Source of the DNA: Styela clava
Taxonomy: Eukaryota
DNA length: 64,000 nt
Reading direction: 5' to 3'
Assembly (NCBI RefSeq): GCF_964204865.1
Contig: NC_135264.1
Location: 1,984,001-2,048,000, forward strand
Made by a program: the position numbers and the translations under genes. Every line of letters begins with the position of its first letter. Within the stretch, counting starts at the first letter, position 1. Under the pieces are notes generated by a model, which worked only from the letters and a program-made list of their open reading frames with translations, did not search any database and had not been told where the DNA came from. Of this stretch, positions 42,338 through 63,677 are shown piece after piece.

Positions 42338-43321
42338 TCAGAAACTGTTCAAAATTTTGAAGTGATTTTCTAACGTTCTCGAAACGTTCCATCGTGTTTC
42401 ATTATAGTTTACATCCAGATTCCTCAGTTGTGATCCAAACTGAGATAATTCCTCTTCGTATCGAGGTTGCATCGGGTCGTTGATTCCCCACAATGTAACT
42501 TGAACATATATTTTAATATTTTTCATCCATATTCCATCTTTTAAATATGCTAAGACATTAGAATCCACTACCCACAGGCCACGTGTTCCACTATGGCCTC
42601 CATCGAGCCAATATAATTCAGAAATTTTTGCAACAAACTTCCTTACAGATTTATAATCTTCGTCTTCTGACAATGCAACTGAATATTTTTTCGACATATA
42701 TGCAACTTCGTGCAAAAACTGATTCAAAACAATGCATCCCTTGCTAAATCCTACAAGAATTATTGGCCTATTAAGTGTCGTGTTGTGAAATTTCATTGTT
42801 TGGTGTTGCCCAGAAGAAAGAAGTTTTACGAAATGAGTTAGCCCACCATGTGACGCGTTATGAGGGATAACCGGAATACCGTAGTCAACGTCGTCATTAA
42901 CAGCGAACGGAAGAAAGTTTGGGTAAAGACTGAAAATTCCCCCATTTCGCTTTGAAGGTTGCACTATCCATAAACAGTTGTTGGGGAATCTTTTTTTTAG
43001 TATTCGAAACATTTTTTCATAACTCCAATTAATCCATTCAACGCTGAGATCGTACTTTTTCATGTTTTTCTCGAAATCTTGTATATCTCCAGGAAAGAAT
43101 ACAACATGGCCATATGATTGTGATGACACAGGACAAGAATAAACTAAACTGTTCCGGCGACCTTCCAAGCCCTCTATATCTTGAAAATTTCGAAATTCCT
43201 CATCATTTTCTGGTGCATCAGTTATTGTTGAACCACTTTGATTCAATGTTATTTCCAAGAGCAAAATTAAAATTATAAATGCGACTAAGGCGAATGACGA
43301 TTCATATGAGGAAGCTAGCAT
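42338..43321 (-). CDS. C2orf69: C2orf69 (UPF0565)-like alpha/beta-hydrolase-fold protein, single coding exon
   Basis: Motifs VVFFPGDIQ, WSYE, LVGFSKGCIVLNQFLHE, YWLDGGH and LENHF match the family. First ATG is at 43321 (the ORF track starts at an upstream TTG). Confidence 0.85.
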   Translation of the reverse strand: MLASSYESSFALVAFIILILLLEITLNQSGSTITDAPENDEEFRNFQDIEGLEGRRNSLVYSCPVSSQSYGHVVFFPGDIQDFEKNMKKYDLSVEWINWSYEKMFRILKKRFPNNCLWIVQPSKRNGGIFSLYPNFLPFAVNDDVDYGIPVIPHNASHGGLTHFVKLLSSGQHQTMKFHNTTLNRPIILVGFSKGCIVLNQFLHEVAYMSKKYSVALSEDEDYKSVRKFVAKISELYWLDGGHSGTRGLWVVDSNVLAYLKDGIWMKNIKIYVQVTLWGINDPMQPRYEEELSQFGSQLRNLDVNYNETRWNVSRTLENHFKILNSF

Positions 43322-44865
43322 TATTGGCAATGAGTTGCACTAATCTTCCTGGAACAAAAAGTATTAAAATTACAAAACTATTCCGCCATATTTAAAAAGC
43401 TGCATCGATTTTTTACTCCAAGTCTTTGTATCGATTTTCGAGTGAGATAAAATCTTGCGCCACGAAAGAGCATACGCCCAAGGCCGTCATTGTGGTTGTA
43501 AATTGAAACGTAATAAACTGATGTAGGTTGTGATGTCATTTATACCAGGTGTATAACAATACATACAATCAGAAAAAAAAAACATATTTACAGGGTACGA
43601 ATTTGAAACCCAACTTTACCTCTCCTAGTGTAAATGGGATCAATTTAATCGATGTTCATTCATTTTTCCACGGTAATACAGTGTAAGCGAGAGGTTGGTA
43701 AACTTTTGTCATTTGCAGACAAACAGTAAATATTGTATGACTTGGCAAGCATGAATATTTTTTGCATGTAATAGTCAGATAAGAAATGCACAAAGCGTTT
43801 CGCACTAATGCTATTTTTTGCGTGGTTAGTTAAATTTAAATTGAGATTTCTCTCGAGAAGGTCTGAATATCCAAAAATAATATAAATCTCAAATAGAATA
43901 TAGATTATTAAATTTTCCAGTTTAATAGGCTTCATTTGAGAATTGTCTGCGACAAAATTAATGTTAACATCATTCGGAGTACTCAGAAGAACGAAAACCA
44001 GAAAATTGAGAAGAGAATTCATTCGTAACTCCTTTTCCCCAGACATGAAATCTTTGTGGTTTCCTGGGTTTGACAAAATTAACGAAGTTATTAAATAAGC
44101 ATTTCTCGAATGCGCGTTTGAGTCATTCAGGGTCGCGAAATTCAGTACAACACTTTATTTCGCTTCTGGGAAATGGAAAATAAAGACATTCCATTGCGTA
44201 CACTCCTCTCTAGCAACCTGTGCTATTGTCTATATTCAAAATGATATTCAAAATTCAAATATATATATATATATATATTCTGTTCTTTTTTAGATATTCC
44301 ATCAAAATCTGATGTATTAGGGCTTTCGATCATTTTATGAAGCTGCCGAGGCTGCAAAAGATGTGGCGCAGCTTGTACTGCCTGGCTAGATTCCGTTGAT
44401 ATTTATGTCGTTAATAAGTTAAATACTAAATCTTCTGTTATTATTTGTTCAAGTCAGAGCGCGTGATGCAATTTTTTTCATATCACTGTTATCTGAATAA
44501 ACAATAAGCGCGTGATTGTGACGCGGATTTGTGTCGTGCTTGATAGCTTCAATGAAATATAAAAGTGCTGCCTGAATATTTAAAAGCACAAATGTAGCTA
44601 AACGCATTTGGGAGTAAGACACGTGTTTGTGACTCGCTAATTGCAAATAGTCCTCCATACTATTTTAGTGACCTTTAATAGTGCTTCGACTCATTTCATT
44701 ATTAGTAGTTACAAAGGGTGCAATTTCAGGCAGTGTGTCGTTAAAGCTTCGTTAGTTCGATTATTATATTTTGCAACACGTTTTATGATTTTTTCATGAT
44801 TTATGTTTGTTGTTCACCTTTTGTCTTTAGATATTTGAGAATCGCTATACTCTCACCCACACATC

Positions 44866-46401
44866 ATGAAAATTAACACTTATGTCATCATAATTATGAT
44901 GACTGAATTTTGCGTAGGTGCCGCGATGGCGGATTCTCGTCCTAATATTTTGTTCATATTAGCCGATGACTTTGGATTCAATGATATTGGATATCATGCC
45001 AGTGAACATGAATCAGCAATAAAAACTCCTCATTTGGATTTCTTGGCTGAGAACGGAATAAAACTCGAAAATTATTACGTTCAACCAATTTGCTCGCCAA
45101 CCAGGAGTCAACTAATGAGTGGTCGTTATCAGATTCATACAGGTTTGCAGCACGGAGTGATTCGACCTTCACAACCAAACGCGTTGCCAATTCAAAATAA
45201 GATCATGCCTGAACAATTAAAAAATTGTGGCTACGATACACACATGGTGGGAAAATGGCATCTTGGTTTTTATGAAGAAAAATTTTTGCCATGGAAAAGA
45301 GGTTTTAACTCGTATTTTGGGTATTTAACCGGAGCTGAGGACTACTATACTCATGAGCGATGTTTCAATGGAATGTGCGGAGAAGATATGTGGGATTCTG
45401 AAATTGGACCCGTGAATAACACATGGGGGAATAACACATATTCCGCTCATTTATTCGCTAGAAAAGCAATTGAGGCAATTGACAAACGTGATTCTACAAA
45501 ACCGTTGATCATGTATTTGGCATATCAATCTGTACACGGGCCTTTGCAAGTGCCAGATAAGTATACTGAAATGTTCAAAGACATTAAAGATAAAGCACGA
45601 AGAACTTACGCTGGAATGGTGTTAGCATTAGATGAGTCAGTTTAGAATGTGACTCAGCACTTAGCTAAAGTTGGTATTCTGGATAACACTATCATTGTGT
45701 TTTCCACTGATAACGGCGGCCAGACTATGGCCGGTGGTAATAACTGGCCACTAAGAGGGAGGAAAGCCACTCTTTGGGAAGGTGGCGTTAGAGGAGCGGG
45801 ATTCATGTATGGTAAACTACTCGAGGCTAAAGGTGTGACACATAAGGGGCTGTTACATGTTTCAGACTGGTTTCCGACACTACTACAAGGTGTCGCAATG
45901 TGTTCAACATTAAATGGTACCCAGCCATTAGATGGATACAATCAATGGGACGCCATTCGTCAAAAGGAATCATCGCCCAGAACGGAAATTTTACATAACA
46001 TTGACCCTTTGTATAGTGCCAATTCAAATGAGACAGAAATGCAAAACATTATTATCAATGGATTTGACATTAAGGTTCACGCAGCAATTCGAAGTGGACC
46101 TTGGAAATTACTAACTGGAAATCCGGGCTTTGACCAATGGGTAAAACCTCCCGAATCCGAACAAAATGGAGTTGGCCAAATGACCTATGCTAATTCGTCC
46201 TCAAATGTAATGTTGTTCAACATAGAGAATGACCCTTATGAACATAACGAAGTATCCGAAATGAATCCGACAATAGTTCAAAATCTTCTTAGTAAACTCG
46301 CTAAATATAATTCAACTGCCGTTCCTGTTAGATATCCACCAATGGATGCGAAGGCGAATCCCAAAATGCATGGTGGCTTCTGGAGCCCTTGGATGAAATA
46401 A
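44866..46401 (+). CDS. Arylsulfatase B/I/J-like sulfatase, intronless, interrupted by one in-frame TAG (possible null allele or base-call error)
   Basis: Signal-like N-terminus, PNILFILADD, CSPTR (formylglycine motif), VGKWHLG, STDNGG, NWPLRGRK, WEGGVR. Both ORF halves are in one frame, separated only by TAG at 45643-45645. Confidence 0.85.
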
Positions 46402-47673
46402 TTGTAGAATAACGTGTACTGTGCTGTGTGCTGTGCTGTGTTTACAATTACAGTAATTTGATTGCCTAATAAAAATAACATTATATTCAATTATATAAAT
46501 AGTATTATACTTTTTTTTTTAATTCTAAAATCTAGGTTAAAACAACCATCTACATATGCAATTTTCTGAGATATACCATATGATTTATTATATATAATAT
46601 ATTCAAAGGACTTAGTAGTTGTTACTGGTTTGTCTCCCAATTATAGAACAACGTTTTAAAGTAGGTTTTTATCGAATTAATCCCTAGATAGGAACTACAA
46701 AATGAATTGAAACCTCGTATTTCGGATCCCAATCGCAATTACAAGGAATTGGGCGAGATTCGGAAGCAGAATTGGTGTAATAAGAATTCACACAATTTCG
46801 GATTCGATATCACGTCCACCTCGTTTTCATTGAGTCCTTATTTATTTTTGTTTTAACTAACCGGCGCCTTCGTTATATATATATATATACATTCACCTCC
46901 AAAAAGCTCAGTTAAAAAACGATATTCGTTCGAAATAATGCGAAGATCTCCATTGACATACAAATGTAATGTATAACAGGCTATTATCAAAAAAAAATAA
47001 GATTCTCATCGTTAGCGACCACCAAATCGAAAACTTCTCTAAACTTTAGTAATTTGATGTCAAGTGTACTCTACCGGTGTTCTAATGCAAATCCATGAAA
47101 ACACAGCAATGAGTTTCTTTGGAATATTTTAGTGAGTTGGTTAGATGATAGTATATTACTAGAGTCCTAGACAATCAAACATAATTCGTTCAAGATTGGT
47201 ATTCGACTACCGATGACATAAGAAACAATGGTTATTATTTTAATTCGTTCTTACGCCTTTGAAATCACAAATGTGTACCTAAACAACAATAAACATTCAA
47301 ACGTGTACCTAATGAAAATTGAACAATAAGAGGTCAATATATGTATAAATCGCGTATCAGTTACTGTACGTTTGAGCAAATTACTGTGGTTTCTATGGGA
47401 TTCGTTTTATGTATGAGATGAAGTCATCAAAAATTGCACACATTTTGGCGGTTCCACTTTTGTGTTAGTCGATAAGATTGCTGTATACTGGTAGTCTACT
47501 GTGACAGATTGAATACCCGAACTACTCCGTTTCCATATATTTGAGCATCGATCTCTTGTTGAGTGGTCAAGAGATGCGCGGTTCGGGTGACGTAATCTCA
47601 CTCGGTGGCGTGCTCGGGTGTTCGGGCATCGAATTTCTGTTCAATTACAGCAGCATTTTTGACTAGAATATTT

Positions 47674-47908: not shown

Positions 47909-48543
47909 GAATTTTTCATTCGACTTACGAATTGTTCGATTATCGAGGTATGACTGTATATTTAATTAAAAGGAAACCAAGATGTCGGCAATTGTTCTCA
48001 TAAAAGAATGCATTCATTCGCCTTTATTCACTATTGAAATGGATGCACAGATACCAAACATATCAATTAATAGAAATTTTATCAAAGAAAACGAATGACA
48101 GAATAAGATTCTTGAATATATTATTGATTGGTATTAAGATTGGTATTCGACTACCGATAACATAAGAAGCAATGGTTATTTTTTTCAATCCATTCTTACG
48201 CATTCTAAAATACCCAAAATATTAACAAATGTGTACCTAAACAACAATAAACAACACCTAATGAAAATTGAACAAAGGGAGGTCAATATATATATAAATC
48301 GCGTATCAGTTGCTGTACGTTTGGGCAAATTACTGTGGTTTCTTTGGAATTCGTTTTATGTATGCGATGAAATCATCAAAACTTGCGCACATTTGGCGGT
48401 TCCACTTTCGTGTTAGTCAAGAAGATTGCTGTATACTGGTAGCCTATACTGTGACATATTGGATACCAAAACTCTTTCATTTTGGCTTTCTTTTCCATAT
48501 AGTCGAGCATCGATTGTTGATTTAATGTTGAATTGTCGAGAGA

Positions 48544-48902: not shown

Positions 48903-49639
48903 CGAATTCCTGTTCGATTACCGCAGCATTATTGACTAGAATTGTTTAGTCGACTACCGAATTGTACGATTGTCAAGGTATAATATAAATGTATATTTAA
49001 TTGAAAGGAAACCAAGATGTCGGCAATTGTTCTCATATAAGAATGCATTCATTCGTCTTTATTCAGTATTGAAATGGATGCACAGATTCACAAAACATAT
49101 AAATTAATAGGAACTTAATAAATGAAAACGAAATACAGAATAAGATTCTTGAATATAATAAACTATTATTATTGGAAAAGACTATAAGCAGGCTATTGTG
49201 TCATAAGATATTTCCAGAATACACGCCATTGTGGCAATTGAAATGATATTCATTAAATTATGCAACATTATTGTAGTATTGTAGATATAGAGTATTACCT
49301 ATTGTTCAATATTGAATTCTTTGTATATGCGCAGGATACTGAATATGCACGTAGAAAATATAAATCCACGCTGTGGAGGGCAGGATAACACAACACGCCG
49401 AAGAGCAAAGACCAACTGTTTGAAAGCAACGAGGTATTTATTTATATTCTTTTGTCAAATAGCTATGGTGATTGGGATGCGAACCAAAGTCATCTAACGA
49501 CGGCGAGACTGAAATTAACTATGCGATCTATTTAATTATCTATGTTTTACTGACTTTGGGTTCGAACCTGTCATCAAACAATCTGTGTATTAATTTGTTT
49601 ACATCATAGGTTTCAGAATAAAGAAAATCTTCAAAGAAA

Positions 49640-52600
49640 ATGCGTCTGAAAGTTGCAGCTATTCTTTTTGTCGCATTCTCTCTCCTACTGGTGGAGGAGT
49701 CTCGGGGCTGGAGGAGAATTTTTCGACGAGTAGGAAGGATAGTTAAGAGGGTTGTGAAGGCCTACAAACGTATTAGAGGAACTACGTAAGTTTCTTTACA
49801 TTGATCCTATAAATATTTAATTTATTACACTGAACAGTTTATTGTCTTTGCGAGCGCTCCAGAAGTGTGTGTACCAATATGAAGGTAACTACTTTTGATC
49901 GCCTATTTTACATCAAGTTGCGTAATGGGACTAAAACCTATGGACTGGGGGATATTCACTTGGCTAATAAAGACAGTCCCCGAACTCGTAATAGAACTAA
50001 AATAAGTAAAAATTAGAATAAAACTATGGCCTAACTATTATAATCTGGTACACATACAGCGGGAGTACCCCATCGCGAATTCTTCGCATGTCACACACCT
50101 CAAATGTACTAGACTAATAGTGTTTTTTGTGTATTCTTAACATTAAAATAAAAATTTTAAGTTCATTGGCAAGAATTTACTTTTTTAAGTTGCAAGTGAC
50201 GTCCAAGTTAAGTAGCAAGTGACGTTCAACTTATTTTCAAGCTCAATTTATTTTCATTGATATTTTTCACGGAAAATTATATGAATAAAACTATATTCTT
50301 AATGGGACGGATGAAACACTTCGACAGGCCGGATACGGCCCGATGCCACAATTTGCCCACCCGATTTAAACAATAAAAAGAACAAATTTATTTTGAGGTT
50401 AAGTTTTCGGTGTGTCCGTGGTAAAAATAAGAAACACTTTCTCCAGTGCGATATAAAATTCGAATATCAATTTTCTCTGATGCTTAGTTTTTGCGGTGCA
50501 GGGAGTCTAATTAAAAAAATTGAAACGACGATTATTATATTCTTCTATATATTATACTCTTCATTTATTTGAATACTTACGACACTTTACTTTTATAGCG
50601 GGGGCCACATTGCAATAGAAGCGGTCAAAAAATATCTTACAACTGTATGGAACAACAAAGAAGAAATCAATGAGCTGAGAGAGCTGAGAGAAAAGGTAAT
50701 CCACTATAATCTGTTTGACATAAAGCTAGCGTTTATTAACCCTTTTCCAGCGGCTAAGCTCATATGAGAGAATATTTACGCTTAATTTTGTGCTCGGTAA
50801 ACTACTGTTAATATCGCTCTTAGCTCTTTGTTGACTTTATCGCCTGATATGAGAGAAGCGATGGAACCTTCCAGCCGTGACGCATCGTGCGAATTCTATA
50901 AATAGCGTGGATTTCAAAATCGCCTGTCAGACGTCTGAAAATGTCGACTCAGCTCAGACAGGAAATACTCCTTTATAATGACTTATTGTTGGTTTAGCAT
51001 GTATTTTCAGACATATATACTATCCCTGACCATCCCTGGCGCTGTGTTGTTTTGATAAATATGATTTTGACTGCTCCATAGTTGGCAGAAGTATGGAGAT
51101 TTTTTGTAGTTAAAAAAAACGTAAAATTAATGGTAATTTTAACGCGTAAATGCGCGTATGGGATTGTTTACGCCGTTCTACGCGCATTTCCGTCGAAAAA
51201 ATTTAATTTTTTTGCGTTGGGGGTGGTCTGTGCAGTAATAATAAGAGCTGTGACGTCATCAAAATCAGTAATTTTAGCCTTGAACTTGATACACCTGTAG
51301 ATACAATTGTGAATTTCAGAGTAATAACCATTTATGCTATAATAGGCGTTTCGGTGATGTTGTGTTAGGAAAAACTTGACGAAAACGTTGAAAAAAAAAT
51401 TAATTAATTAGGAATTAATTATTAACCCTCTACTGTACACAGAATTTCTAAAAGTCTAATTTATTTTTAGAAATTTTTGAGATATTTTTGCAAAAAAATT
51501 TTTTTTTCGGAGTGTAATTTAAAGATATATTGCTGAATAGAACTCTAGCACACGCCTTTAAAAATCCATAAGAGAAGCTTTAGGGCTTAGTGGTTGACAA
51601 AAAAAATAACTTTAAAAAGACCATGTCAAATAAATTGGGTCAACAGCTGTCAGAGAGTTAAAGTGTTAAGACTTGACCGTTTTAGCATCACAGGTTACAA
51701 ATCTCGAGTTTAAATTCTAGAGATATAAGTGATACTTGTGCAGGGGCAAAAGTCGCGAATACGTGTCGTATGAAGATCAAATGTTTACGTTTTCCATTTA
51801 CATTGCAAATGTCGTAAAAATTCTTCGCTTTGCCGCGAATGCCCGTGACGAAATATTATTGAAACAATCTTACCTGGCGTGAACTATTTGCTATTAACTG
51901 ATAAAGCAGAGTATTGAATGGCAACTCTTGAGTATTGCCCATATTTACGAGTCAATGTTAATATGATTAACTGGGTATTCGTCTTAGAAACGTGTACTTG
52001 ATAGTTAAGGAAGCCCCAACTGTTATGCAAAAAACCCACGACGCCAAGGAGTACAGCAATCCTGTCGCACATAATTATACCCGCTGAATTTCAACCTGCA
52101 CTCTCGCATAGAGTAATCAAAAGATCAAATAGCAACGTGTTCCTAACGCCAAGCACAACGCCATAACCGTTGACATTGGTTACTTTTGTAGCTTCCAAAT
52201 TTCAGCACAACTTTCTCTTTGTTTAGGACGAAGAAGCCTATATGAAAGCAATGTCCATGATCGCTGATGAAATTGCGGCAGAATCTGGAGATGGTGAAGC
52301 TCAGTTCATGGTGGAAATGTTGGACGAACTTGCCAGCATGCCTGACGGTAATTTGTTTAATTTGACGGTAGAGTGTTTGCACTGGATACGAAAGAACTGA
52401 TATGTAGGGTGTTATAACGTTTGGAAATAGGCCAAAATTCTCCTATTCGATATTTAGTCAAGTCACAGTATTTCACACATTGTAAGTTCACGAGTCTGAC
52501 CATACTTTTAGCTCTATCTGAACCCTTAACCTAGAATGTTGCGCATATCACTGGATTGCGCGAAGCAACTTTAAATTGAATAAATAGCAATTGCACGTCC

Positions 52601-53069
52601 CTTTTTCAGAATTTGTCAAGTCTCGCGCCCCACCTCCAAAAAAAAAAATAGCTAACAATAAGCAACAAATAACAGATAGTTAGGCGAAAGTATGTTTTAT
52701 TTAAAAAACGCGTTAGAAATACGTGGATGGAACGTAAATAATGAAAAAATGAAAAGTTTTGAAATGTAAAGAAGGCCGGCAAGATGAAATCTGATGAATA
52801 TTTTCATTTTCAGTTAGCTTCACGCCTTCAAAAAATTGTCTACGCGCGCCACCGTTTGAAAACCACTGGCCTGATTGATCTATTTTCTGATTTTACTGGA
52901 CTTGACAAGATTTTGTTCAAAACAGCCGATTCAATTTGTGACTTTCTCCTATAACATACACTATTAACGTCCTTTCACTTCTATTTCAGAGGAATTCAAG
53001 CAATTCGTGGCTGAGCATGAACTTGAAGAAATTGCAGACTCCGGCGAGCTACGGTTATCAGATCATTAA
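49640..53069 (+). CDS. Putative antimicrobial/host-defence peptide precursor (signal, cationic amphipathic peptide, anionic C-terminal propiece), 147 aa, 4 coding exons
   Basis: Exons 49640-49785, 50599-50695, 52227-52347, 52990-53069, all GT-AG with compatible phases (2, 0, 1). Translation: MRLKVAAILFVAFSLLLVEESRG-WRRIFRRVGRIVKRVVKAYKRIRG-TTGGHIAIEAVKKYLTTVWNNKEEINELRELREKDEEAYMKAMSMIADEIAAESGDGEAQFMVEMLDELASMPDEEFKQFVAEHELEEIADSGELRLSDH*. AATAAA lies ~110 nt after the stop. Confidence 0.82.
49853..50069. mobile_element. MITE variant related to the 47674 family, in intron 1 of the peptide gene
   Basis: Shares cacttggcta..cgtaatagaactaaaa..atggccta..cgggagtacc with the 47674 copy; left arm matches 63927-64000. 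Confidence 0.7.
50740..51657. mobile_element. Possible non-autonomous piggyBac-like insertion in intron 2 of the peptide gene
   Basis: TTAA on both sides; ends cccttttccagcgg / cagctgtcagagag are only loosely complementary. Confidence 0.35.
52008..52100 (-). mobile_element. SINE fragment, family of 26166-26440
   Basis: aaggaagcc..cgacg..aagg..cagcaatcct.tcgcacataa.tat..aacctgc matches the 26322-26399 segment. Confidence 0.6.
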
Positions 53070-53918
53070 AATGGAGTTTCTTGACGGACAGACCGAGAAA
53101 CAGACAACTCGTTTTAATTTTATACTTTAGTTTTTTTATTGTTTTACAAAGATATTGCAGATTCAAAAAAAAAAAAATAATAATAAATGAATGGCGCCAC
53201 CATAAATTGAAATTGTATTTTATTTTTTCCTGCTACAGTATTAGTCAAGACAGTGGTTCTTAAAGGTAATTTACCGGGGGCCAAAATTAGAAGCGGGACG
53301 ATATTTGCGCGCCGGCAAGGGGCAGATGCTTCTGTCGGTACGTATTATCAAGATACCAATATAATTGAATTGTTACGATTATACACGTGCTTAAATTGTG
53401 GTAATGAGGTCAAAATTGGGGATATCTAAAGATAGAGAGAGTGTTGAATTATTTCACTTAAGTTCGGCGGGTCGTAATAAACCGTTACGCGAGCCGCTTA
53501 AAAACTGAATGAACTTTTCTGCGTTTTGTTGCCATTTGTCTAATTATGGTAGATAGAATTATAGGCTCATTAATAAACGAGTAATTGGGAATTTTATACT
53601 TGTTGCGTTATAATCTGTTCTACGTAAAGAATATAATCGTCAAAACAGCTGCTTTGTTACTATAATTCAGTGAAGCGTCGCGGGCCGGATTATATTGCTC
53701 CGCGGGCCGTGGTTTGCCGACCCCTGTTCTGGGGGCAAAATGGAAGCATACTTCATGGTTTTGGGTGAAAGTTCTCAAGTAACGAGTCAAATCTCGTGCC
53801 CCGATAAATTTAAAAAACTTTATATTACTAAGTCGAGTTACCATTGTTCCAAGTCAAACTGTTCCTAACTGTTTTGAGTTCTACGTCACCTATAAAGTGC
53901 GAGGGTGCTGCCCTTGAA

Positions 53919-59145: not shown

Positions 59146-62100
59146 ATGGATGTGGATGTAGATAATAAACCATCAAAACAACACAAAGTAAGAAAAGCTG
59201 GCAGGAAAGCAGAAAAAAGGAAACTGAAGGAAGACAACAGCAGAGAGGATGCAACTACTAAAAAGAAAAACCCAAAAGCGTATGCAATCCAAAGTGTTAA
59301 CAAATTAGCCAAGTCGTTTCATCGGGCACAAGACATCAAAACGAAAAAACATCATATACCTGTCGTTGATAGAACCCCACAGGTGCCACCACCTGTCGTT
59401 GTTGCTATAGTTGGTCCACCAAAGGTTGGTAAAACGACTTTGTTACAATGTATTATAAAGAATTATACAAAGCAAAAACTGACTAATATTCAAGGACCAG
59501 TCACAGTCGTATCTGGTAAAAATCGTAGACTCACAATTATCGAATGTCCGAACGACATTAGTGCTATGATTGATATTGCAAAAATTGCGGACTTGGTACT
59601 TTTACTTGTTGATGCAGGATTTGGATTTGAAATGGAAACTTTTGAATTTTTGAACATCTGCCAAGTGCATGGTATGCCAAAAATAATGGGTGTTTTGACT
59701 CATTTGGATGCAATTGACAATGCGAAGAAAATAAAGAAAACAAAAAAATTATTAAAACATAGATTTTGGACTGAAATATACCAAGGTGCCAAGTTGTTTT
59801 ATTTAAGCAGAATGGTCTATGGTGAATATCAAAAAATGGAAATTCATAATTTATGTCGATTTATCAGCGTAATGAAGTTCAGACCTTTGATATGGAGATC
59901 AACACATTCATATTTATTAACTGATAGAATGGAAGACCTAACCGATCCTGAAAAAATTCGACAAGATTCTATTTGTAATCGGAATATATCATTGTATGGT
60001 TACGTCCGTGGAATGCCACTAAAAAATCTTTCATCAATTCATATTCCTGGTGTCGGGGATCAAATTATTAAAAATATCTCATTTCTTCCGGACCCGTGCC
60101 CTTTGCCCGAAAAGGGAGAAAAAAGACAAAGGCGTACTCTGGATGTAAAAGAAAGACTTATTTATGCTCCTATGTCTGGAGTTGGTGGAATTATTTATGA
60201 TAAGGATGCTGTTTATATTGATGTGCAAAGCTCGACACAAAGGAATAATGGACAAGTCGGTGAAATAGAAACTATTGATAACGAAATAGTAGATGATTCA
60301 ATGATTGGAACAATGACATTATCAAAACAAACTATTGATCATAAAATGGAAAAGAGTCAATTTTCACTTCTGGAGGGAATGAAACCAATTACGAACAACG
60401 AAGCAGAAAGTATGATTGAAATGCCTATGGAAGAAAAAACATTTGATGTTGAAACAAATCGTGTTAGGAGAAGAGCAGTTTTTTCTATGAAAGATGGTGA
60501 ACAGCAAGATTCTACATCAGACGATGATGAGGAAGGTTATCAAAGTGGAGATTCCGATGATGAAAGTTGTAACGAATCTGAAAATGGAATAGAAGAACCA
60601 AATGGCATTTCTGAAAGTAAACTGAAATGGAAAGAAAATTTGAAATTGAAAGCTCAAAATTTGTATATTCACAGGCAGAAAATGATGAAAAATCTTCCAA
60701 AGTTGGTTTATGGTAAAATTGAAATCAAATCAGACACTTCTGAGTCCGAGGAAGATGAAAAAGTCGCTGGTGATTTATTTGTCGTCAAACGGAATATGAA
60801 AGCAAAGAAAAATACGAAAGACAATAAAGACTGCAACATAACTTTGCGGCGACAACATGGGGATGAAAATAGTGAAGATATACGCCAAAGTATCAGTGAT
60901 TGTTTTGTCACTGGTGATTGGAATCAAGATGAAGACGCCTCTCACTTATTACAAGAGGATGAAAATTTGTATGGTGATTTTGAAGATTTGGAAACAGGAC
61001 AATCTTTCACATCTGGAGCTAAAGATAATGAAAGTGATTCTGATGATGTTGATACAGTTAGAATTAAGAAACCCGATGACCGTGAAGCTAGATTGAGAGA
61101 AAAACGTCTTGCCAGAAAACGAAAAATGAAAGAAATATTCGATCGGGAATATGACGTCAGCCAAGAAAATGGTGAAGTAACAACCGCAAGTGGAAGCCTT
61201 TTCGACTCTGTCAAAACTGAACTGGCTGAACAAGCGAAATTGAACCGTGCTGAATTTGAGGATATGGATGACGCAACTAGAGTACAATATGAAGGCTACA
61301 GACCCGGAATGTATGTTCGCATTGAACTGCACGATATTCCTTGTGAGTTTGTAAAATATTTCAATCCAACATACCCAGTTATAGCAGGTGGTTTGTTGGC
61401 AACTGAAATTCAAACAGGCTTTATCAGAGTTCGAGTTAAAAAACATCGCTGGTATCCGAAAATTTTGAAAACACGTAATCCAATGATATTTTCTATGGGT
61501 TGGAGAAGATTTCAATCTTTGCCGATGTATTATATGGAAGATCACAATTTGAGACAGAGATATCTTAAATATACACCACAAAATATGCATTGTTGGGCTG
61601 TAATGTGGGGTCCTCTTTGCCCACAAGGTACAGGATTCTTAGCAATCCAAGCTCTTGCAAATAGAGACGTTCCTAATTTTAGAATCACTGCCTCTGGGAC
61701 TATTTTAGAATCTGATAAAAGTACAAAATTGGTTAAAAAATTGAAGCTTATTGGTTATCCATATAAGATATTTAAAAATACCTGTTTTGTGAAAGGAATG
61801 TTCAACTCATCTCTTGAAGTTGCTAAATTTGAGGGAGCAGCCATTCGAACTGTCAGCGGCATACGAGGACAGATAAAAAGAGCGGTTACTGATGGCCCGA
61901 ACAATAGCGGAGGATCCGAAGCCGGATCTTTCCGAGCATCTTTCGAAGATCGTATATTGATGAGTGACATAGTGTTCTGTCGTACCTGGTGTCCAGTTGA
62001 TGTTCCAAAATTTTTTTTGAATTGTGCAAATTTAATGTTGCCCGACAAAGATAGTTGGAGTGCAATGAAAACTGTCGGACAACTGCGTCATGAAAAAGAT

Positions 62101-62496
62101 CAGAAATTACAACCGAACGAAGACTCCCTTTATAGACCAATCGAAAGAGAAACTAGGGTTTTCAATCCTGTTGTAATACCCAAAAAATTACAAAAAGAAT
62201 TACCATATAAAGTAAGACCGAAGTTACGAAGAGAAAAAATAGAAAGCAGACAAGAAGGAATGATGAAAGTTGCGATTGTCAGAGAACCGAAAGATAGAAA
62301 AATAGTCGAACTTATGACAGCATTGCGTGCGCTTGATCATGACAAAAAGAAAAAGACCAAACAAGAGAAGAGGGTCAAATATCTCAAGCACAGAGAAATG
62401 TTAGAAAAAGAGGAAATCAAAAATAAATGGAAACATAAAGAAGCAAAAAGGAAAGCTTACGCAATGCTGAATCAAAAACAGAAGAAGAAAAGATAG
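59146..62496 (+). CDS. BMS1: Ribosome biogenesis GTPase BMS1, single coding exon, 1116 aa
   Basis: KKHHIPVVDR, P-loop GPPKVGKTT, HRFWTEIYQGAKLFYLS, KKHRWYPKILK, VAKFEGAAIRTVSGIRGQIK. Confidence 0.97.
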   Translation: MDVDVDNKPSKQHKVRKAGRKAEKRKLKEDNSREDATTKKKNPKAYAIQSVNKLAKSFHRAQDIKTKKHHIPVVDRTPQVPPPVVVAIVGPPKVGKTTLLQCIIKNYTKQKLTNIQGPVTVVSGKNRRLTIIECPNDISAMIDIAKIADLVLLLVDAGFGFEMETFEFLNICQVHGMPKIMGVLTHLDAIDNAKKIKKTKKLLKHRFWTEIYQGAKLFYLSRMVYGEYQKMEIHNLCRFISVMKFRPLIWRSTHSYLLTDRMEDLTDPEKIRQDSICNRNISLYGYVRGMPLKNLSSIHIPGVGDQIIKNISFLPDPCPLPEKGEKRQRRTLDVKERLIYAPMSGVGGIIYDKDAVYIDVQSSTQRNNGQVGEIETIDNEIVDDSMIGTMTLSKQTIDHKMEKSQFSLLEGMKPITNNEAESMIEMPMEEKTFDVETNRVRRRAVFSMKDGEQQDSTSDDDEEGYQSGDSDDESCNESENGIEEPNGISESKLKWKENLKLKAQNLYIHRQKMMKNLPKLVYGKIEIKSDTSESEEDEKVAGDLFVVKRNMKAKKNTKDNKDCNITLRRQHGDENSEDIRQSISDCFVTGDWNQDEDASHLLQEDENLYGDFEDLETGQSFTSGAKDNESDSDDVDTVRIKKPDDREARLREKRLARKRKMKEIFDREYDVSQENGEVTTASGSLFDSVKTELAEQAKLNRAEFEDMDDATRVQYEGYRPGMYVRIELHDIPCEFVKYFNPTYPVIAGGLLATEIQTGFIRVRVKKHRWYPKILKTRNPMIFSMGWRRFQSLPMYYMEDHNLRQRYLKYTPQNMHCWAVMWGPLCPQGTGFLAIQALANRDVPNFRITASGTILESDKSTKLVKKLKLIGYPYKIFKNTCFVKGMFNSSLEVAKFEGAAIRTVSGIRGQIKRAVTDGPNNSGGSEAGSFRASFEDRILMSDIVFCRTWCPVDVPKFFLNCANLMLPDKDSWSAMKTVGQLRHEKDQKLQPNEDSLYRPIERETRVFNPVVIPKKLQKELPYKVRPKLRREKIESRQEGMMKVAIVREPKDRKIVELMTALRALDHDKKKKTKQEKRVKYLKHREMLEKEEIKNKWKHKEAKRKAYAMLNQKQKKKR

Positions 62497-63149
62497 GAAA
62501 TTTAGTTACACTTGAAGAGCTTCTCATTGTATCTTATATGCTAAATTAAAGCATGAAAGCTATTCAGAATTTTCGACTTATAAGGGCATTAACTAAATAG
62601 ATACCAAATAGAAACAATTTTCTTTTACATTTATTAATATCATCCAATTGTATTTTCCACTAAGGCAGCCAGTGTTATGTTGATTGATCCATAGTAATTT
62701 TTTGAAAAGAGAGATATTGCATGAAAGGCAGTGTTTCTATTCTTGCATATTCTTTGAAAATACTTTTAGGGGATTTATTTGTGTTTCTTAGCTAAATTTT
62801 TCGAATAATGTTAATTGAATAAACAAACAGTCTACTGTCAGGTAGCTTACATGTCATTTTTTTCTCGTACTGCATCTTGTTTAAAAGACATGTATTTGTG
62901 TCAAAACTAAGGTTATTTGCATACTACTGTATTTGAAATGGTATTGTAATTATTGATGCCATCATAGACTAATGCTAAATTGTGCTTTCATGTATGTCTT
63001 TCTCCCTCCTCTGGATAGGAACAGTCCTATTTCACTAAGTGTCTTATTATTTTCTTTGCCTAGATGATTACCTAATTTCAGGCACATTAAATTAACATTT
63101 GAGTACTGATTGGCATGAAGACTGAAGTTGTTTTGTGAATATTACAAAC

Positions 63150-63677
63150 ATGGGAAGACGTTATTACTGTGAATTCTGCGATCGGGCATTTTTAGACAAT
63201 CTGAATGCGAGAAAGAAGCATGTTGTGAGCAGTACGCATCAACAGTTGCGGAAGGCCTATTATGACAAATTCAAAACTAAGCAACAAAAGCTGAATGACG
63301 AACTTGCAAAGCCACGAATATGCAAATATTACCAGAATTCAGGGAATTGCCAATTTGGGTCTAGTTGCCGATACCGTCATATTAGCGATGTCGAAATAGA
63401 GAGAATAAAGAAAGAAATTAATGAAGAATCAAAAAAAGATGAAATGAGCAATAGAACTGTCAAAAACTGGCTTTCTTTAAACAAACAAAAACAAATCAGC
63501 AAAGAAAAGCTTGAGAAAACTGGTGGTGCTGCGGTCTCTGAGCGGAAAATCCCTGACATCCCTCAAACATCAACTGTACTCCCAGATTCTTTGAAGCAGT
63601 TGCCCTTTCTTCCTTTGTCGATGCAACCACCTCCAGAAGATGGTTGGCCACGACTTAATGAGGTTGAATGGGGATGA
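63150..63677 (+). CDS. ZMAT5: Zinc finger matrin-type 5 (U11/U12 snRNP 20K), single coding exon
   Basis: MGRRYYCEFCDRAF..RKKH..H (U1C/matrin finger), CCCH finger CKYYQNSGNCQFGSSCRYRH, C-terminal LPLSMQPPPEDGWP..EWG. ATG at 63150. Confidence 0.93.
   Translation: MGRRYYCEFCDRAFLDNLNARKKHVVSSTHQQLRKAYYDKFKTKQQKLNDELAKPRICKYYQNSGNCQFGSSCRYRHISDVEIERIKKEINEESKKDEMSNRTVKNWLSLNKQKQISKEKLEKTGGAAVSERKIPDIPQTSTVLPDSLKQLPFLPLSMQPPPEDGWPRLNEVEWG

Follow-up and report, generated by a model that had tools for sequence, protein, structure and literature searches.

We describe LOC120334427, a gene on the plus strand of a 64,000-nucleotide stretch of Styela clava DNA (contig NC_135264.1, positions 1,984,001 to 2,048,000 of the forward strand; hereafter the window, whose numbering is used unless another contig is named). 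With a probability of about 0.68, LOC120334427 is an intact, spliced gene for a 147-residue prepropeptide, the precursor of a styelin-like linear cationic helical antimicrobial peptide with a long propiece, and belongs to a lineage-expanded family. The gene model, the paralog family, the charge layout, the amphipathicity of the cationic part, and the pattern of variation were observed directly, and the family is probably a distant homolog of the styelins, which are haemocyte peptides of the same species (PMC10608444).

Gene model

Joining the four coding exons (Table 1) yields 146 + 97 + 121 + 80 = 444 nucleotides (nt), that is, 147 codons and a TAA stop codon. All three introns start with GTAA and end in a pyrimidine-rich tract and AG, with phases 2, 0, and 1. 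A preliminary description of this DNA had proposed that four exons join through canonical splice sites into a 147-residue open reading frame (ORF). Indeed, the introns are of the GT..AG type, and the joined translation is identical, residue for residue and over its full length, to XP_039257871.2 (P0005), an "uncharacterized protein" of S. clava LOC120334427. The latter is an NCBI gene model that is independent of the exon joining performed here. An earlier RefSeq version of the product (P0010) differs from P0005 solely by Ile45Val.

Based on this identity, LOC120334427 is already annotated, though it has neither a name, nor a Pfam family, nor a paper. The gene is thus not hidden, as had been thought; at a threshold of 40 residues, exon 1 (49640..49789) and exon 3 (52242..52400) also appear as ORFs. 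A search of the public protein collection, using as query the exon-3 part of a 145-residue open frame of the paralog L030, retrieved seven S. clava RefSeq proteins, every one of them an "uncharacterized protein". The six LOC identifiers of the family are not mentioned in the searchable literature, in agreement with the earlier impression that the peptide is not a described one.

The flanks of the gene were compared among paralogs. In an alignment of the upstream regions of eight paralogs, the sequence ...ttacattatacgtttcag is followed by a conserved leader of 23 nt. The gtttcag motif ahead of this leader is a candidate spliced-leader trans-splice acceptor, or may be the end of an intron in the 5' untranslated region (UTR). 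Downstream, AATAAA-like signals occur in three of the four other intact paralogs, the copy without one being L032.

Predicted product

Residues 1-23 contain the three regions of a signal peptide, read by eye as an n-region MRLK, a 14-residue hydrophobic core, and a polar end in which Ser occupies -3 and Gly occupies -1. Cleavage after S-R-G was assigned using the -3/-1 rule and an alignment with the styelins, in which the mature peptide reveals where cleavage occurs. The signal peptide of 23 residues ending in S-R-G that had been suggested at the outset was therefore retained.

Residues 24-47 include 8 Arg and 3 Lys but no acidic residue, giving a net charge of +11. The hydrophobic moment of this stretch is 0.87, with a sharp peak at 100 degrees per residue; shuffled versions had a mean of 0.31, and 4 of 10,000 reached 0.87. 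Mean hydrophobicity is low (Eisenberg H -0.52). By contrast, the last 78 residues hold 26 Asp/Glu versus 6 Lys/Arg, and the net charge of the proprotein is -7. The recounts agree with the composition first given for the cationic stretch and for the acidic tail of about 78 residues, and the moment bears out the spacing expected of an amphipathic helix. Exon 1, described as holding almost exactly the signal plus the cationic peptide, encodes residues 1-48 and two further bases, i.e., one extra Thr.

An AlphaFold2 model based on an 11-member alignment was all-helical and of low confidence, with a mean predicted local distance difference test score (pLDDT) of 52.8. The modelled helices span residues 24-46, 51-81, 83-101, 103-118, and 121-141. 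As this score is too weak to show packing, the model was used for secondary structure only.

Taken together, the traits of a linear cationic alpha-helical antimicrobial-peptide precursor are present: a secretion signal, a cationic amphipathic helix, an anionic propiece, and a variable mature part next to a conserved signal and propiece in a multigene family. The order of signal, cationic amphipathic helix, and acidic propiece, first noted as a likeness to tunicate haemocyte peptides, is borne out, and S. clava is indeed a tunicate.

Paralog family

Each exon was searched singly against the S. clava genome (377 Mb, 380 contigs). On contig C10, at 6.25-6.43 Mb, each had paralogous counterparts that were ordered and oriented as in LOC120334427, and a weaker relative lay on contig C3. 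In total, there are about 11 paralogous loci: seven on C10, of which four are intact, three on C3, and a more distant one on C4. LOC120334427 itself lies on C19. In each of the four intact C10 paralogs, the four exons appear again in order together with their splice sites, and the amphipathic periodicity was reached by only 4 of 10,000 shuffles; the arrangement is thus more than chance. A chance ORF was rejected.

The intact C10 copies are L030 and L031, a near-identical tandem pair encoding 163 residues, L032 (148 residues), and L033 (157 residues). In the last exon of L030, L031, and L033, the frame extends 14-16 codons further (tail ...PDGQTDEPTPSY), running through what is the 3' UTR of LOC120334427 and L032 (window 53067-53120). 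The position of the stop codon has thus moved within the family. The remaining C10 copies are decayed. L034 (G000:C10:6408300-6412000) has a TAA within exon 2; L035 (C10:6364300-6369500) has a run of Gly codons in place of most of exon 1; and L036 (C10:6249500-6254000) is frameshifted at a run of A residues in exon 1, with exons 3-4 absent from the stretch examined. RefSeq models a 104-residue fragment (P0002) and a 140-residue protein (P0006) at two of these three loci.

The family profile also identified the three C3 genes (P0008, P0011/P0012, and P0013). At the C4 locus, L047 (G000:C4:7116200-7120200), the first exon, near C4:7117238, encodes a signal peptide followed by a stretch that begins with GW and is rich in Trp, Lys, and Arg; an acidic piece resembling exon 3 lies approximately 700 bp downstream.

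Beyond this genome, an exhaustive HMMER pass of the exon-3 profile over 1.84 billion representatives matched S. clava only, apart from a low-complexity chance match in a fungus (P0009), and a search of the whole-family profile against a word-indexed collection of 5.8 billion likewise returned S. clava proteins only. Since few ascidian proteomes are in these collections, the matches do not establish that the family is restricted to this species.

The gene had been put forward as a new antimicrobial-peptide precursor. Judging from its sequence, it does appear to be an undescribed precursor of the right kind; it is not an orphan, as it has this family around it. Because the family comprises about 11 loci and is probably distant kin of the styelins, LOC120334427 adds to a known peptide type and does not constitute a separate one.

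Sequence divergence

We compared nonsynonymous (dN) and synonymous (dS) divergence among the intact copies; the dN/dS ratios below come from few sites and carry no significance test. In the cationic part (residues 24-49), dN was 0.31-0.66, dS was 0.26-0.40, and dN/dS was 0.78-2.16, the nucleotide identity of exon 1 being approximately 79%. For exon 3, the corresponding values were 0.03-0.18, 0.05-0.51, and 0.35-0.82, with a nucleotide identity of 90-96% in the best-conserved copies. For exon 4, they were 0.10-0.22, 0.22-0.43, and 0.28-0.73, with 76-82% nucleotide identity over longer stretches that include this exon. Introns were 72-80% identical. Exon 3 of LOC120334427 was 83-93% identical to that of the five other C10 copies in which this exon is well preserved, 70% identical to that of L033, and 31% identical to that of a C3 copy.

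Despite these differences, the charge and amphipathic periodicity of the cationic part are retained across all the intact paralogs. Thus, the peptide-coding part changes no more slowly than neutral sequence without losing either property, and the propiece is constrained. A variable mature part and a tandem cluster with pseudogenes are typical of antimicrobial-peptide families. The evolutionary pattern observed here, namely a variable cationic part, a conserved propiece, and a tandem family with pseudogenes, fits an antimicrobial-peptide precursor.

Variation was also apparent between assemblies. The RefSeq proteins of one locus in two assembly versions, P0001 versus P0004 for LOC120339777 and P0003 versus P0007 for LOC120340133, differ strongly, mostly in the cationic part. 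These differences suggest that alleles or copy numbers vary greatly within the cluster.

Synonymous divergence between the C19 gene and L030 was not uniform. It was only 0.047 in exon 3 (52227-52347 versus positions 3018-3138 of L030), compared with 0.25-0.40 in the other exons of the pair. Interchromosomal gene conversion or constraint at the nucleotide level could produce such a low value.

Relationship to styelins

Styelins are heavily modified peptides that contain bromo-Trp, hydroxylated Lys and Arg, 3,4-dihydroxyphenylalanine, and an amide. In the S. clava genome, the true styelin genes lie at C10:16.31-16.34 Mb. Their coding sequence is divided among four exons, one of which starts with TDEEF, and the first intron, of phase 2, interrupts the part for the mature peptide. 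For comparison with the LOC120334427 family, we used the styelin D precursor and a second styelin precursor, rebuilt from the loci L042 and L046.

Pfam searches returned no family above its cut-off. At E values up to 10, P0005 matched neither Styelin (PF17562) nor Cecropin (PF00272). The best match to PF17562 came from the paralog P0001, whose residues 118-144 aligned with profile positions 32-55 at 11.5 bits (E 0.42), the cut-off being 27 bits. This weak match falls on the tail of two paralogs. By the Pfam threshold, then, the LOC120334427 protein is not a member of the Styelin family.

Profile comparisons pointed to a distant link. A hidden Markov model (HMM) of the family matched the styelin D precursor with 19.5 bits; the best of 2000 shuffled sequences reached 11.3 bits, and none reached 19.5. 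This match consisted of two collinear pieces: the signal with the GW start of the peptide, and the M-x-DEEF-x-x-F tail. HHalign aligned the family with the styelins over 64 columns with a probability of 92.8% (E 3.9e-7). In a six-frame profile search of the whole 377-Mb genome, only three sub-threshold matches of the first-exon type lay outside the C10, C19, and C3 loci: two were first exons of styelins, and one was the C4 relative. Based on these sequence comparisons, the peptide family is probably distantly homologous to the styelins.

Extent of the mature peptide

Two spans fit the candidate mature peptide. The first, residues 24-46/47, would end about where variable gives way to conserved sequence and exon 1 meets exon 2. 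At this point, the paralogs have RR or RK just before a conserved GHIAIE motif, and LOC120334427 has Arg-Gly. The second span, residues 24 to ~66, would give a cecropin-like arrangement of a helix, a Gly-rich hinge, and a second helix; it is this span that HHalign aligned with the 32-residue styelin.

Mature styelins have 31-32 residues and end at a Gly that serves as the amide donor, after which comes the acidic tail DMTDEEF (PMC10608444; the tail is also found in the genomic sequence). At the position that HHalign aligned with the styelin end, several paralogs have Leu-Gly followed by acidic residues; in LOC120334427 this Gly is absent. The Gly of either IRG or TGG had been proposed as an amidation donor. 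Neither is followed by basic residues, and with the styelin-type "LG then acidic" site missing as well, amidation, though possible, is unsupported for LOC120334427.

Proposed function and alternatives

By analogy with known peptides and by the logic of the sequence, the precursor could act as follows. The 23-residue signal peptide would direct it to the secretory pathway and be removed right before Trp24. In analogy to styelins and botryllin, the propeptide might then be stored in haemocyte granules, where the helical acidic propiece of approximately 80 residues would offset, and thereby neutralize, the charge of the cationic part. Proteolysis near Arg46/Gly47 (RR or RK in paralogs), or near residue 66, would free a strongly cationic amphipathic helix; the cut at ~66 would yield the longer helix-hinge-helix form. 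The freed peptide would bind and permeabilize anionic microbial membranes. In this scheme, the site of expression, the cleavage sites, any modifications, the neutralization by the propiece, and the antimicrobial activity are all predicted properties.

Several observations weigh against an antimicrobial-peptide precursor of styelin type. The dN/dS values derive from few sites, and their significance is not established. No Pfam family exceeds its cut-off, and the Styelin model reaches at most 11.5 of the 27 bits, in a paralog only. The signal peptide supplies part of the styelin profile score, and signal peptides can match by composition. Moreover, the HMM and HHalign alignments set the styelin tail against different acidic stretches of the LOC120334427 product. 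The AlphaFold2 model is of low confidence (pLDDT 52.8). Most antimicrobial peptides carry less charge than +11 over 24 residues, a value that would equally be compatible with a role in binding nucleic acids or in entering cells. Finally, the acidic propiece is the most conserved part of the protein and could itself be the functional product.

The foremost alternative, which we consider unlikely, retains the membrane-disrupting helix and changes its target. The freed peptide would act mainly against eukaryotic cells, as a cytolytic effector of cytotoxic haemocytes in allorejection or in defence against fouling, predators, or parasites. For styelins, haemolysis and cytotoxicity towards eukaryotic cells have also been described (PMC10608444), and botryllin, a product of cytotoxic morula cells, is partly responsible for the cytotoxicity of conditioned medium (PMC9966394). 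Residues 24-47, with their very high charge and hydrophobic moment, would suit such a role as well. The sequence, however, offers nothing to separate this target from a microbial one, and the peptide has an Eisenberg H of -0.52. Low mean hydrophobicity usually accompanies low haemolysis.

Slightly less probable still is that the part with a function is the conserved acidic helical domain encoded by exons 3-4, which might serve, for instance, in the granule matrix, in cation binding, or in sorting, with the cationic stretch as a fast-evolving accessory or targeting segment. Exon 3 is the best-conserved part of the family and has been retained even in the decayed copies L034 and L035 and in the C3 and C4 branches; the negative charge of the proprotein also suits this possibility. 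However, no intact paralog has lost the charge and periodicity of the cationic part, fast though this part changes, which argues for selection on it. Furthermore, the acidic domain has no match in Pfam or the PDB, and a conserved propiece beside a variable mature peptide is the rule in antimicrobial-peptide families such as frog skin peptides and cathelicidins.

A secreted signalling peptide (a hormone, neuropeptide, or cytokine-like molecule) with a receptor would likewise have a signal peptide, and the RR/RK preceding GHIAIE in paralogs could be a processing site, with Gly residues as possible amide donors. Receptor ligands are normally conserved, however, whereas the candidate peptide is the most variable part here. 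Tandem expansion, pseudogenes, and strong variation between assemblies suit defence genes, and the profile searches of protein collections found no homolog outside S. clava. We therefore regard a signalling role as very improbable. There is equally little to be said for LOC120334427 being a silent or decaying copy that is annotated yet has no product: it is a single, dispersed copy on C19, apart from a C10 cluster in which three copies are clearly broken, but its ORF is intact, no splice site is missing, and it has both the conserved leader and the poly(A) signal; its propiece has a dN/dS below 1 versus every paralog, and its model was stable over two RefSeq annotation versions with one conservative Ile/Val difference.

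A broader proposal can be made, which we hold as tentative and somewhat short of an even chance. The family may form a branch of a styelin superfamily that is undescribed, highly polymorphic, and of recent expansion. Its conserved acidic helical domain of approximately 80 residues, which styelins do not have, may act as a built-in inhibitor and a granule-sorting module for very cationic, Arg-rich peptides. Residues 24-46 may then be a new, potent, and salt-tolerant antimicrobial peptide, and the family may show how short styelin-type and long botryllin-type precursors relate to one another.

For 25 years, styelins, clavanins, and clavaspirin have been the known gene-encoded peptide antibiotics of S. 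clava; reviews up to 2026 name no others for this species, and one from 2026 gives styelins and clavanins alone. If our interpretation is correct, LOC120334427 and its approximately ten relatives would add a whole family of unusually Arg-rich peptides with a long conserved propiece. The peptides would be candidates for synthesis and testing at high salt, and the precursors would provide a natural series in which to examine how membrane-active peptides are kept harmless by an acidic prodomain. No new principle is involved, as the layout and likely mode of action are standard.

Features and genomic context

Table 1. Features of LOC120334427 and its flanks, in window coordinates.
Feature	Position	Strand	Basis or remarks
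gtttcag, motif resembling a 3' splice acceptor	49610..49616	+	Conserved, 23 nt 5' of the ATG; upstream alignment of 8 paralogs
5' leader, putative 5' UTR	49617..49639	+	Near-identical across all paralogs
Exon 1, first part: signal peptide, residues 1-23	49640..49708	+	Aligns with styelin signal peptide
Exon 1, second part: residues 24-47, cationic amphipathic helix; candidate for the mature peptide or for the helix at its N-terminus	49709..49780	+	Hydrophobic moment; model helix 24-46; dN/dS
Exon 1, end: Thr48 and two bases of codon 49	49781..49785	+	Followed by donor GTAAGT
Intron 1, phase 2	49786..50598	+	Contains interspersed repeat 49854-50069
Exon 2, residues 49-81: Gly-rich hinge, conserved GHIAIE motif, second helix, ELRELREK motif	50599..50695	+	
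Intron 2, phase 0	50696..52226	+	
Exon 3, residues 82-121: best-conserved stretch of the acidic propiece	52227..52347	+	Paralog identities; dN/dS
Intron 3, phase 1	52348..52989	+	
Exon 4, residues 122-147 and TAA stop: acidic tail	52990..53069	+	Splice model
3' UTR	53070..53200	+	AATAAA at 53182-53187, 113 nt past the stop; region alignable among paralogs

The repeat in intron 1 is approximately 215 bp long, and copies that are 84-85% identical to it occur at non-homologous positions in L032, L035, and L037. An MPDEEFxQF motif similar to the styelin tail straddles the exon 3/4 junction, with M-P-D encoded in exon 3.

LOC120334427 stands alone within a 12.7-kb intergenic stretch. According to Pfam, its neighbours (42338-46401 and 59146-63677) encode a member of the C2orf69 family (-), a sulfatase split over two ORFs (+), BMS1 (+, a single ORF of 1116 residues), and a ZMAT5-like U1/CCCH zinc-finger protein (+). 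All of these are separate, unrelated genes. The possibility that the four exons belong to a larger known protein, named at the outset as one that would overturn the prediction, was rejected on this basis. A tRNA scan of the window from 40 to 60 kb detected no tRNA gene; thus, GGTTCGAAC-like motifs close to LOC120334427 are not tRNA genes. Upstream of the gene, at 47251-47379 and 48185-48328 (-), are two similar short ORFs about 930 bp apart that both start with M-x-K-R-T-x-T-D-T-R-F-I and represent a repeated element.

Comparison with known systems

Among systems outside the tunicates, a PDB sequence search gave nothing credible (DYRK2, E 0.07-0.1), and the nearest cluster by ESM Atlas protein-language-model features was that of the bombinin precursors (PF05298), at a value of 0.75 that is below a meaningful level. 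Like the LOC120334427 product, these amphibian antimicrobial-peptide precursors have approximately 140 residues and combine cationic with acidic parts. They differ in that the LOC120334427 product has no Pfam match to them and in that the acidic pieces of bombinins lie ahead of the peptides.

The cecropins of insects and Ascaris and the pleurocidin/piscidins of fish share with the LOC120334427 product a linear cationic amphipathic helix straight after the signal and, possibly, the helix / Gly hinge / helix arrangement. Ascaris cecropins and piscidins have an acidic C-terminal propiece. That of LOC120334427 is much longer, and its product had no Pfam Cecropin match, as noted above. The kinship with these peptides is one of design, descent not being demonstrated.

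Botryllin of Botryllus schlosseri, another member of the Styelidae, has nearly the same layout as the LOC120334427 product. Its 158 residues comprise a 23-residue signal, a 37-residue cationic helical peptide, and a C-terminal propiece of approximately 98 residues (PMC9966394). Botryllin is kept as a propeptide in the granules of morula cells and kills bacteria and yeast (PMC9966394). No similarity between the two was detected in a comparison that used three printed botryllin epitopes, which on reading had no counterpart in P0005, and, in place of a direct alignment, the family profile search, whose collection may or may not include botryllin.

The styelins A-E (PF17562) differ from the LOC120334427 product in several respects. 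Their precursors are about half as long (~81 versus 147 residues) and are without approximately 75 residues of the LOC120334427 product, comprising the GHIAIE helix, the ELRELREK motif, and the conserved acidic helices of exon 3. MPDEEFxQF lies approximately 75 residues further on than the styelin DMTDEEF. The intron before the DEEF motif is shifted by four bases and has another phase, and the later introns do not correspond exactly. The LOC120334427 peptide is rich in Arg and not in Phe, Tyr, and Lys, has no KHK motif, and in this copy is without the "LG then acidic" amidation site. Nevertheless, the two share a similar signal peptide, followed at once by a cationic helical peptide with a (G)W start. 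Both have four coding exons, the first of which (146 nt in LOC120334427 versus 113 nt in styelin genes) ends at a phase-2 intron within the cationic part, and both have an acidic C-terminal tail with the motif M-x-D-E-E-F-x-x-F. If the precursor is of the kind proposed, it would link the short styelin precursors to the long botryllin-type precursors of styelid ascidians.

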